The translations under genes and the position numbers were made by a program. A stretch of 64,000 bases of DNA, taken from positions 133,858,001 through 133,922,000 of the forward strand of contig NC_091290.1 of the NCBI RefSeq assembly GCF_032444005.1. The letters run 5' to 3'. Every line of letters begins with the position of its first letter. The stretch's first letter is position 1. Positions 40,401 to 44,600 of the stretch are shown piece by piece. The notes under the pieces were generated by a model. That model did not search any database. It worked only from the letters and a program-made list of their open reading frames with translations, and was not told the origin of the DNA. Source of the stretch: Ranitomeya imitator (taxonomy: Eukaryota).

Positions 40401-41633
40401 GAGCACTTTAGCCCCTTAGATGCCACAGTCAAATGAAACCGCAGCATTTAAGGGGGATAGAAATGGAGGAAAGTGTCTCTTCTGACAGGGGGGCCAATGG
40501 CGTTATCATTATGGCCCCTGGATTAATTGAAGACCACCTGGATCTGCCTTATTTTTACACCTAAGATTGGTAATTTTACAAGACAGTGCGAAATTACAGA
40601 TAACAAAAACAATGTATTTTTTAAATAACATTCTTTTGACGCCTCTCACCATCTGTTCCAAGAACGCAAAAATAATAATACTTAAAAAAAAAAAGTAAAA
40701 TAATCTTGTAATAGTGCGCCACCTGCTGGCGACTTTCAGTAAATAAATAACATCCTGTAATAGTGCGCCACCTGCTGGCGACTTTCAGCAAATAAATAAC
40801 ATCCTGTAATAGTGCGCCACCTGCTGGCGACTTTCAGTAAATAAATAACATCCTGTAATAGTGCGCCACCTGCTGGCGACTTTCAGCAAATAAATAACAT
40901 CCTGTAATGGTGCGCCACCTGCTGGCGACTTTCAGTAAATAAATAACATCCTGTAATAGTGCGCCACCTGCTGGCGACTTTCAGTAAATAAATAACATCC
41001 TGCAATAGTGCGCCACCTGCTGGGGCCTTCGAGTGTAGCAGTTACCCGCTCCTTACGCGACACGATGTCCCGGATCTGTGCGAAGTCCTCCTTACGGCAG
41101 TTTTTGAAGGCGTCCACGTACAGATGGAAAAAGTATTCCAACACCCACTGGTTTACCAGAGGCTCCAGTCTTAGCAGGTTGCAGTCCTCGGTGCCCAACT
41201 CCATCCTGCACCCTATTAGTAAAAAAATAAGTAATTCTGCCGCGAAATGGCCCCACTTCCGGTGATGCTGTCATGTGACTTGGATGTTGACGTCGGCCAT
41301 GATGGGAAGGGCGGAAGTTGTGATTTTTATTATTATTATTTTCGCTTTTTTACGTGTAAAAATGTGCACATAATGAGATGCAAGCAGTTGCTGTATTAGA
41401 TTAGATTAGAGATACAGTTTTCGGTTCCCACATCAAACATGGCTGCTTTTTTCTTTTTTATATGTCTATTCTAATTGGTTGGTGGCCTGAGAGAACCGGC
41501 GCTAGTGATTGGATGACTGTTTTGCGAGCATCCCGCCTTTCTGAAGGCGATTGGTTGTCACCTTGGAGACCTCACCTGTGTCCATGAGCCGAGTGTCTGA
41601 GGCGTCGCTGCTACGGAAGCCGGGGGTCGTCAT
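34456..41633 (-). CDS. TERF2: Telomeric repeat-binding factor 2 (600 aa from ATG 41633, or 578 aa from ATG 41204)
   Basis: complement(join(34456-34614,36155-36192,36531-36616,37568-38242,38545-38720,38833-38979,39120-39206,39803-39927,40098-40193,41057-41212,41576-41633)), total 1803 nt, phases consistent. TRFH domain ([11 protein letters not shown]..., TPLESAV), RAP1-binding-like LSAIRSKF..., [10 protein letters not shown], Myb domain [22 protein letters not shown]...[12 protein letters not shown]. The first exon 41576-41633 is less certain (~0.55). Confidence 0.92.
35242..36056. mobile_element. MITE with internal ~90-bp inverted repeat, TERF2 last intron
   Basis: Ends GGCAGTCTCACACGTC...GACGTGTGAAACCGGCC flanked by TAA. 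Internal arms ~35400-35490 and ~35660-35750 are reverse complements. Confidence 0.7.
37627..37920 (-). repeat. Coding 21-bp tandem repeat, 14 copies, in TERF2 exon
   Basis: Unit CAG GAG GAG CCC AAG CGC (A/G)GC on the minus strand, encoding (Q/E)EEPKR(S/G/N/R) x14 in frame. Confidence 0.95.
40709..41024. repeat. 49-bp tandem array (6 full units plus a partial 7th) carrying CTCF and forkhead motifs
   Basis: Unit TAATAGTGCGCCACCTGCTGGCGACTTTCAGTAAATAAATAACATCCTG; the core CGCCACCTGCTGG starts at 40717 + 49n (n=0-6). Confidence 0.93.
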
Positions 41634-41668
41634 ATCAGTAGTTACGTAACGCGGTTTACACACCGGCA
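41634..41668. promoter_or_regulatory. TERF2/CYB5B divergent spacer with perfect PAR-bZIP palindrome
   Basis: GTTACGTAAC at 41641-41650. Reverse-CCAAT boxes (ATTGG) lie at ~41475, ~41508 and ~41550 upstream of CYB5B. Confidence 0.65.
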
Positions 41669-44600
41669 ATGGCGAACGGTGAAGGCGGCTCCAGCGAGGA
41701 GTCTGAGGCGACTTACTACAGCCTGGAAGATGTGAGGAAAAGAAACAGCGCGAAAGAGCTATGGCTGGTGATCCACGGCCGGGTGTACGACATCACACGC
41801 TTTGTGGAAGAGGTGAGGACCGGACGGCGACGGTGACTGAGGCGGGGGCGTCTGTGCGGCTTCACCCGGGGGAAAGAAGAGTGACCGTGATGTGTGCGAC
41901 TGTATCTGCACTAGAGGCGTTACAGCAGAGGAGAGCGTCCCCGGTATAATGGGGCGTCCCCGGTATATGGCCGGTATAATGGGGCGTCCCCGGTATATGG
42001 CCGGTATAATGGGGCGTCCCCGGTATATGGCCGGTATAATGGGGTGTCCCCGGTATATGGCCGGTCTCCGGTATAATGGGGCGTCCCCGGTATATGGCCG
42101 GTATAATGGGGCGTCCCCGGTATAATGGGGCGTCCCCGGTATAATGGGGCGTCCCCGGTATAATGGGGCGTCCCCGGTATAATGGGGCGTCCCCGGTATA
42201 TGGCCGGTATAATGGGGCGTCCCCGGTATATGGCCGGTATAATGGGGCGTCCCCGGTATATGGCCGGTATAATGGGGCGTCCCCGGTATATGGCCGGTCC
42301 CCGGTATAATGGGGCGTCCCCGGTATATGGCCGGTCTCCGGTATAATGGGGCGTCCCCGGTATATGGCCGGTCTCCGGTATAATGGGGCGTCCCCGGTAT
42401 ATGGCCGGTCCCCGGTATAATGGGGCGTCCCCGGTATAATGGGGCGTCCCCGGTATATGGCCGGTCTCCGGTATAATGGGGCGTCCCCGGTATATGGCCA
42501 GTCTCCACTGTAATGGGGCGTCCCCGGTATATGGCCGGTTTCCACTATAATGGGGCGTCCCCGGTATATGGCCGGTCTCCGGTATAATGGGGCGTCCCCG
42601 GTATATGGCCAGTCTCCACTGTAATGGGGCGTCCCCGGTATATGGCCGGTTTCCACTATAATGGGGCGTCCCCGGTATATGGCCGGTCTCCGGTATAATG
42701 GGGCGTCCCCGGTATATGGCCAGTCTCCACTGTAATGGGGCGTCCCCGGTATATGGCCGGTTTCCACTATAATGGGGCGTCCCCGGTATATGGCCGGTTT
42801 CCACTGTAATGGGGCGTCCCCGGTATATGGCCGGTTTCCACTGTAATGGGGCGTCCCCGGTATATGGCCGGTTTCCACTGTAATGGGGCGTCCCCGGTAT
42901 ATGGCCGGTTTCCACTATGTGAAAGAGGATCTGTTACCAGAAAGATCCTAATTACATATGTAGGGGCGGCTGGAATACTGTGTCCGGTTTTGGGCACCAC
43001 ATTTAAAAAAAAAAATGCATCAACAAAGTGTAGTAAGTTCAGAGAAGAGCCACCAGGATGGTGACCGGTCTGCAAACCATGTCCTGTGAAGAACGGTTAC
43101 AGGATCTGGGAATGTTTAGCTTGCAAAAAAGGAGACTTACTATGTGTCTACAAATATCTCTAGGGCTGTCACATTGTAGAAGGATGATCTTTATTCTCAT
43201 TTGCACAATGAAAGACTACAACCCCTGGCAATAATTATGGAATCGCCGGCCTTGGAGGATGTTCATTCAGTTGTTTAATTTTGTAGAAAAAAATCATATC
43301 ACAGACATGGCACAAAACTACAGTCATTACAAATGGCACTTTCTGGCTTTAAGAAACACCAAAAGAAATCAAGAACATAAATGTGGTAGTCAGTGATGGT
43401 TACTTTTTTTTAACCAAGCATTGATAAAAAATTATAGAGTCATGAAAAACAAACAAACAAAAAAACCCTTCAACACATCACTAGTATTTTGTTGCACCAC
43501 CTCTGGCTTTTCTAACAGCTTGCAGTCTCTGAGGTCTGGACTTAATGAGTGTCACACAGGACTCTCCATCAATCTGGCTCCAACTTTCTCTGATTGCTGT
43601 TGCCAGATCAGCTTTGCAGGTTGGATTCCTGTCATGGACCATTTTCTTCAACTTCCATCAAAGATTTTCCATTGGATTGAGATCCGGACTATTTGCAGCC
43701 ATGACATTGACCTTATGTGTCTATTTTCAAGGAATTTTTTCACAGTTTTTGCTCTATAGCAGGATGCATTATCATCTTGAAAAATGATTTCATCATCCCC
43801 AAACATCCCTTCAATTGATGGGATAAGAAAAGTGTCCAAAATATCAACATAAACTTGTGCATTTACTGAAGATGTAATGGCAGCCATCTCCCCAGTGCCT
43901 TTACCTGACATGCAGCCCCATATCATCAATGACTGTGGAAATTTGCATGTTCTCGTCAGGCAGTCATCTTTATAAATCTCATTGGAACGGCACCAAACAA
44001 AACTTCCAGCATCATCACCTTGCCCAATGCAGATTCGCGATTAATCACTGAATATGACTTTCATCCAGTCATCCACAGTCCACGATTGCTTTTCCTTAGC
44101 CCATTGTAACCTTTTTCTGTTTAGGTGTTAATGATGGCTTTCGCTTAGCTTTCCTGTATGTAAATCCCATTTCCTTCAGGCGGTTTCTTACAGTTCGGTC
44201 ACAGACGTTGACTCCAGTTTCCTCCCATTCGTTCCTCATTTGTTTTGTTGTGCATTTCCTGTTTTGGAGACATATTGCTTTAAGTTTCCTGTCTTGAAGC
44301 TTTGATGTCTTCCTTGGTCTACCAGTATGTTTGCCTTTAACAACATTCCCATGTTGTTTGTATTTGGTCCAGATTTTAGACACAGCTGACTGTGAACAAC
44401 CAACATCTTTTGCAACATTGCGTGATGATTTACCCTCTTGTAAGAGTTTGATAATCCTCTCCTTTGTTTCAATTGACATCTCTCGTGTTGGAACCATGAT
44501 TCATGTCAGTCCACTTGGTGCAACAGCTCTCCGAGGTGTGATCACTCCTTTTTAGATGCAGACTAGCGAGCAGATCTTATTTGATGCAGGTGTTATTTTT

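Follow-up and report, generated by a model that had tools for sequence, protein, structure and literature searches.

A conserved palindrome upstream of CYB5B in frogs, a candidate D-box in the putative leader of this gene

Does the perfect palindrome GTTACGTAAC, which lies beside the divergent genes TERF2 and CYB5B of the poison frog Ranitomeya imitator, belong to one of these genes or to both? The locus was analysed in a window of 64,000 nt (contig NC_091290.1, also CM064367.1 of assembly GCA_032444005.1, positions 133,858,001 to 133,922,000, forward strand), and all positions given here are those of this window. A preliminary description had seen a minus-strand ATG at 41633 (from the CAT at 41631-41633) and a plus-strand ATG at 41669, with 35 bases between the two and the palindrome located among these bases at 41641-41650. 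We found these letters and coordinates to be right. The two ATGs had also been taken for the start codons of TERF2 and CYB5B, and here the gene model had to be corrected: the annotated TERF2 start is at 41204, which puts 465 bp, and not 35, between the annotated start codons of the two genes. The palindrome itself was conserved across neobatrachian frogs, and it is most likely a D-box of CYB5B.

Both genes were identified from their first coding exons. The coding part of CYB5B exon 1 matched the Pfam Cyt-b5 family, its best PDB match was the outer-mitochondrial-membrane form, cytochrome b5 type B, and it agreed with the R. imitator RefSeq cytochrome b5 type B (P0132). The TERF2 exon encodes the beginning of the TRFH domain, and its PDB matches were TRF2 TRFH structures. 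TERF2 relatives were collected by a full-library search with this exon, followed by a word search with the full-length match, which together gave about 40 amphibians. Comparisons used database proteins and single-exon references, with each exon taken singly and not joined into a spliced model. The features around which the question turns are as follows (the sign ^ marks a splice junction).

41057-41204, minus strand: first coding exon of TERF2, MELGTEDC...IRDIVS, with donor CGC^GTAAGG (GT at 41056-41055)
41641-41653, no strand assigned: the palindrome with its invariant CGC/G tail, the 13-mer GTTACGTAACGCG, a candidate D-box 27 nt upstream of the CYB5B ATG
41669-41812, plus strand: coding part of CYB5B exon 1, 48 codons ending ...RFVEE, with donor GTGAGG at 41813

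The palindrome is far from neutral: the 13-mer GTTACGTAACGCG was the best-conserved block upstream of CYB5B across neobatrachian frogs. Among nine neobatrachian sequences, the pairwise identity was 0.98 in the palindrome. The two linkers that flank it reached 0.50 and 0.58, and an ETS site further upstream and the first coding bases reached 0.88 each. The palindrome was invariant in eight of the nine sequences, which included five dendrobatoids, Rhinoderma, Rana temporaria and hylid-like mRNA contigs; Mixophyes carried a single change, GTTACGCAAC. Its position relative to the CYB5B ATG was -27 in Rhinoderma and -35 in Rana temporaria. The 13-mer was found exactly once per locus, and in Rana it was untouched even though the 5' linker there is some 20 nt shorter and the 3' linker 8 nt longer. 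A constant 13-mer amid varying linkers is, by the evidence of the alignment, a classic binding-site footprint. X. laevis kept the CCAAT...ETS core of CYB5B and lacked the palindrome. By anuran divergence times, the palindrome is about 130-150 million years old. The occurrence of RTTACGTAAY by itself is just mildly unusual: the 64-kb window holds one site against 0.09 expected, at least one site occurred in 9 of 100 shuffles, and the relaxed core TTAYGTAA was not enriched in the window. The weight comes from conservation.

We then compared the arrangement of the two genes across amphibians, a check that the preliminary description had proposed. The genes stand head to head, and they are far closer in dendrobatoids than in other frogs. 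The ATG-to-ATG distance was 465 bp in R. imitator, 491 bp in R. variabilis, 419 bp in D. tinctorius (488 bp to the MEF ATG) and 498 bp in both P. terribilis and Anomaloglossus, as against 3199 bp in Rhinoderma, 5428 bp in Rana temporaria, 5281 bp in Mixophyes and more than 6000 bp in Engystomops. In human, we take the distance to be tens of kb. When the R. imitator interval was compared with Rhinoderma by BLAST, it split into a TERF2-adjacent and a CYB5B-adjacent piece that lie 2.9 kb apart. This clean split and the spacer lengths thus indicated that the tight pair is a derived dendrobatoid state, reached through loss of the spacer. The palindrome was kept whether TERF2 lay 0.5 kb or 3-5 kb away; therefore, it is a CYB5B element, and its conservation is not owed to TERF2. 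In X. laevis (L010), the order was locally rearranged relative to neobatrachians: CYB5B follows TERF2 on the strand of TERF2, and a TMED6-like gene precedes TERF2 on the other strand.

Between the promoter modules of R. imitator, two features were recorded.

41321-41471, no strand assigned: poorly conserved AT-rich spacer, left over from a spacer that measures 3-5 kb in other frogs
41427-41446, no strand assigned: conserved YY1-like island CCCACATCAAACATGGCTGC within the AT-rich spacer

We examined the letters of the palindrome, which the preliminary description had assigned to the PAR-bZIP/NFIL3 type. The assignment held: GTTACGTAAC matched at ten of ten positions the sequence RTTAYGTAAY, the consensus of PAR-bZIP factors and E4BP4 (NFIL3) (PMC6627103, PMC12561580). 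Judged by this match, a D-box is the most likely identity of the palindrome, and its binders would be the PAR-bZIP activators (DBP/TEF/HLF) and the NFIL3 repressor. In zebrafish, D-boxes in promoters and 5' untranslated regions (5'UTRs) drive the transcription of heme and mitochondrial genes that is induced by light or reactive oxygen species (ROS), and the induced hemoprotein genes include cyb5a, a paralogue of CYB5B (PMC12561580). A D-box on the frog CYB5B is therefore biologically plausible. Our literature search found no paper tying CYB5B to D-boxes.

The position of the palindrome within CYB5B was indicated by mRNA from another frog. Two Logan contigs from different runs, L011 and L012, carry the spliced CYB5B coding sequence of a hyloid frog closest to hylids. 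Both begin at CCTTGGAGACC (corresponding to 41561 of the window) and continue to the ATG through the palindrome and through the homologue of 41576-41633, the stretch that had been proposed as an upstream TERF2 exon; this stretch is therefore part of the CYB5B 5'UTR, which measures at least 108 nt. Transferred to R. imitator by homology, the start of CYB5B transcription is probably near 41560. The following features lie upstream of the CYB5B coding sequence.

41472-41515, plus strand: another pair of CCAAT boxes in inverted orientation (ATTGG at 41474 and 41508), at about -85 and -50 from the probable start
41549-41621, plus strand: deeply conserved CYB5B core, kept in dendrobatoids, Rana and Mixophyes and for the most part in X. 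laevis
41550-41554, plus strand: CCAAT box (ATTGG) within the core, at about -10 from the probable start
Within 41549-41621, plus strand: block GTCACCTTGGAGACC...CCTGTGT...TGAGCCGAG of the conserved core
41560-41668, plus strand: putative CYB5B 5'UTR of about 109 nt, by homology to L011 and L012, which holds the ETS-like site, the palindrome and the antisense of the proposed TERF2 exon
41613-41621, plus strand: ETS-like ACGGAAGCC within the core

Several other observations concern this side of the locus. The element GTCACCTTGGAGACC..CCTGTGTC (41561-41583), just after the proximal CCAAT box, was conserved from poison frogs to Xenopus, and on the minus strand it reads CCAAGGTGAC, resembling a nuclear-receptor extended half-site. 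The locus of Rana temporaria (L008:690-905) holds an inverted repeat, centred on GATGACGATCGACGTACGTCGATCGTCATC and with arms of some 115 bp each, which duplicates the CYB5B CCAAT and CACCTTGGAGACC core as a mirror image facing TERF2 and makes a lineage-specific and literally symmetric promoter. A GC-rich minisatellite (41941-42918, about 1 kb) of 30/37-bp units CCGGTATAATGGGGCGTCCCCGGTATATGG occupies the start of CYB5B intron 1 and extends the CpG-rich zone.

On the TERF2 side, the R. imitator RefSeq isoforms X1, X2 and X3 all begin with MELGTEDC at the ATG at 41204, which is in a strong Kozak context (AGGATGG); residues 1-49 of X1 (P0126) map to 41204-41058. Nearly all other full-length frog TERF2 models likewise start 10-20 residues ahead of the conserved LEPxVNQWV, indicating that a long N-terminal arm is lacking in frog TRF2. 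When residues 1-140 of TERF2 were used in a word search for fragment proteins from transcript assemblies, which might carry an extension, no match was found. Upstream of the TERF2 ATG, a promoter block was kept in 10 of 10 frogs, X. laevis included, at any distance from CYB5B, and this alignment marks it as TERF2's own core promoter. Its parts are listed below.

41236-41320, minus strand: TERF2 core promoter block (ETS/YY1/cAMP response element (CRE)-E-box/ETS), aligned in 10 frogs
41249-41264, minus strand: ETS CACCGGAAGTGGGGCC
41270-41279, minus strand: E-box-like palindrome GTCATGTGAC
41287-41296, minus strand: CRE-like TTGACGTCGG
41295-41318, minus strand: YY1-like/GC box/ETS GGCCATGATGGGAAGGGCGGAAGT

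YY1 motifs usually sit just downstream of start sites, and for this reason we placed the probable TERF2 transcription start of R. imitator near 41300-41330. The two divergent start sites would then be about 240 bp apart; they are in any case less than 1 kb apart, bounded by the 465 bp between the ATGs. The CpG observed/expected ratio was about 1 on both flanks. The TERF2 mRNA contig L013, from the hylid-like frog, carries 11 nt of 5'UTR only, and no Logan transcript contigs were found for the R. imitator CYB5B and TERF2 proteins, which were present only on the NCBI genome record. In D. tinctorius, the TERF2 RefSeq proteins read contiguously from an ATG inside the E-box through a T-run and the putative acceptor to the MEF start. 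The TERF2 transcript models of this species therefore have no splice at this place, and their beginning lies upstream of the position homologous to 41276. In Ranitomeya and other hyloids, the E-box position (41270-41279) reads CACATG or CATGTG, and its homologue in Anomaloglossus (L005) is a perfect GTCACGTGAC palindrome overlapping a CRE (TGACGTCA). Thus, a clock-type E-box comes and goes at the TERF2 promoter.

Taken as a whole, we consider the following explanation likely. Two independent, ancient and TATA-less core promoters would stand back to back. TERF2 would be driven by the 41236-41320 block, with translation from the ATG at 41204; CYB5B would be driven by its CCAAT boxes, with a start near 41560 and a leader of about 109 nt that holds the ETS-like site and the palindrome. 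The palindrome would act as a DNA-level binding site in the promoter-proximal region of CYB5B, tuning this gene to clock or to light and oxidative-stress signals, and the minus-strand ATG at 41633 would open a chance reading frame. In Dendrobatoidea, the poison-frog superfamily, the 3-5 kb spacer seen in other neobatrachians would have collapsed to the present 419-498 bp between the ATGs, secondarily creating a classical bidirectional pair. Some points weigh against this explanation. The CYB5B start is transferred by homology from the hyloid contigs, whose ends are lower bounds only, and a CCAAT box about 8 nt upstream of that probable start is unusually close. Sites of the TTACGTAA type can be bound by other bZIP factors (C/EBP and ATF/CREB relatives), and the Mixophyes variant GTTACGCAAC is a PAR/C-EBP hybrid. 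Finally, the reading frame from the proposed upstream exon into TERF2 exon 1 was open in four dendrobatids, somewhat above chance.

Among the alternatives, a different reader of the site has the best standing, and we still consider it unlikely. In this case, another bZIP protein or other factor (of C/EBP or ATF/CREB type, or one that reads the extended GTAACGCG) would bind the palindrome as a constitutive housekeeping element, with no clock, light or ROS role. The invariant CGCG tail is not in the D-box consensus, the Mixophyes sequence is half C/EBP-like, and the surrounding promoter is of the typical housekeeping CCAAT/ETS type, all of which would suit such a factor. However, the 10-mer matched RTTAYGTAAY at all ten positions in eight of the nine neobatrachian sequences, and the optima of CRE (TGACGTCA) and C/EBP (TTGCGCAA) sites differ from the palindrome at symmetric positions, a matter of established bZIP specificity that we also counted against another factor.

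The preliminary description had allowed for an upstream TERF2 exon, which would correspond to 41576-41633, and we asked how this reading would fare.

41576-41633, minus strand: putative TERF2 mini-exon, 19 codons and 1 nt, with donor CAG^GTGAGG (GT at 41575-41574) and a second ATG at 41586

A genuine alternative first exon here would run antisense through the CYB5B leader, be spliced to 41212 and add 22 residues (or MDTGCR) to TRF2, and the mRNAs of the two genes would overlap around a palindrome that serves both. The splice signals are good: the donor is near consensus, and the pyrimidine-rich acceptor ctaatag^GG at 41212 is in frame with the mini-exon and MELG. An older, independent, non-RefSeq annotation, P0022 ("unnamed protein product"), begins MDTGCRMELG, that is, it uses the second ATG at 41586 with the same donor and acceptor. 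The donor GT was kept in all hyloids and Mixophyes, and the frame was open in R. imitator, R. variabilis, D. tinctorius (with a +3 indel) and P. terribilis (with a -2 indel, and only through a second acceptor, GCAG^T). RefSeq also lists 5'-variant TERF2 transcripts: isoform X4, with two transcripts, begins MQLFSC in exon 2.

Nevertheless, we regard a TERF2 exon at this place as improbable. The extension was absent from all TERF2 RefSeq isoforms of R. imitator, R. variabilis, D. tinctorius, P. terribilis and Anomaloglossus. P0022 holds several odd, spurious-looking in-frame inserts derived from introns, and it looks to be largely an ab initio model that scored the same splice signals. The ATG at 41633 is CTG in Anomaloglossus, and D. 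tinctorius and P. terribilis no longer have the one at 41586. Relative to Ranitomeya and Dendrobates, there is a length difference of 2 nt in P. terribilis, Anomaloglossus and the outgroups. Most substitutions were non-synonymous, and those codons that stayed invariant fall on the ETS site. The stretch was conserved even where TERF2 lies 3-5 kb off or is rearranged, and the minus-strand donor GT was lost in Rana and Xenopus with its flanks still conserved. In the hyloid contigs it is CYB5B-sense mRNA. Isoform X4 calls for no upstream exon: a second donor of exon 1, at 41046 (CGG^GTAACT) and 11 nt downstream of the RefSeq donor, shifts the frame and could account for it. The ATG at 41633 and its mini-exon are thus most likely a chance open reading frame inside the CYB5B leader. 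P0022 uses the donor at 41046 as well, with a micro-exon inside a CTCF minisatellite (40624-40833). A CACCTG E-box overlapping the mini-exon donor was also considered as a conserved feature and was ruled out, as its first base varies (AACCTG in Rhinoderma, TACCTG in L011).

It is very improbable that the palindrome was kept for a role in the RNA or in translation of the CYB5B leader (by forming a hairpin, say, or by ending an upstream open reading frame, uORF) rather than as a DNA site. In favour of such a role, it lies inside the putative 5'UTR, and an R. imitator plus-strand uORF (ATG at 41584; 41584-41649, 21 codons) stops at a TAA within it. A conserved RNA structure was rejected, however: the leader folded no better than shuffles (z +0.79), the RNAalifold alignment showed practically no covariation (term -0.35), no Rfam family matched, and the palindrome alone can form only a 3-bp stem. 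The uORF was rejected as unconserved and is probably without function; D. tinctorius, P. terribilis, Rana and Mixophyes lack its ATG, and its stop comes earlier in Rhinoderma and L011. Given the footprint pattern, the missing fold, covariation and Rfam signals and the unconserved uORF, the palindrome is most likely a DNA-level factor site.

There remains the part that TERF2 might play. In R. imitator, the palindrome lies about 330-400 bp from the TERF2 promoter, and an influence on TERF2 is possible by analogy with known bidirectional pairs (PMC3091781, PMC10887517). A far stronger proposal is that in poison frogs the loss of the spacer, which brought the TERF2 core promoter to within about 350 bp of the ancient D-box, has newly placed TERF2 under PAR-bZIP/NFIL3 (clock or light/ROS) control, and that a lineage-specific antisense first exon inside the CYB5B leader extends the N-terminus of TRF2; we hold it to be highly doubtful.

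If the proposed explanation is true, the D-box-controlled set of heme and mitochondrial genes described in zebrafish has a counterpart in amphibians and gains the mitochondrial cytochrome b5. The spacers of 0.5 kb and of 3-5 kb also offer a natural contrast for asking whether a nearby promoter element alters the expression of a housekeeping telomere gene. For the specialist, the result is a tidy and testable promoter annotation with nothing surprising in it.

As for the synteny of these genes in vertebrates, every neobatrachian sampled had TERF2 and CYB5B as divergent neighbours, and TMED6, NIP7 and COG8 followed downstream of TERF2. Dendrobatoids differ in the distance, 0.42-0.5 kb in place of the 3-5 kb or more of other neobatrachians, and X. 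laevis differs in its rearranged order.

Bidirectional CpG-rich promoters with CCAAT/NF-Y, ETS/GABP and YY1 motifs provide a second comparison; CRELD2-ALG12 (<400 bp) is one example (PMC3091781; reviewed in PMC10887517). Our literature search found no paper that treats TERF2 and CYB5B as such a pair. Like these promoters, the R. imitator locus lacks a TATA box, carries CCAAT, ETS and YY1-like motifs and lies between divergent genes, here with 465 bp from ATG to ATG. In contrast to them, it consists of two separately conserved core promoters rather than one ancestral shared promoter, and an AT-rich, poorly conserved spacer still parts the two modules.

A third comparison is with the D-box, the PAR-bZIP/E4BP4-NFIL3 response element, as described in zebrafish. 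The candidate frog site differs from it in the invariant CGCG tail, which lies outside the consensus. It resembles it in the complete match to the ten-position consensus and in its promoter-proximal or 5'UTR position, as in zebrafish D-box scans. The host gene also corresponds: in the frog it is a mitochondrial hemoprotein gene, and the D-box and light-induced genes of zebrafish are enriched for heme and mitochondrial functions.

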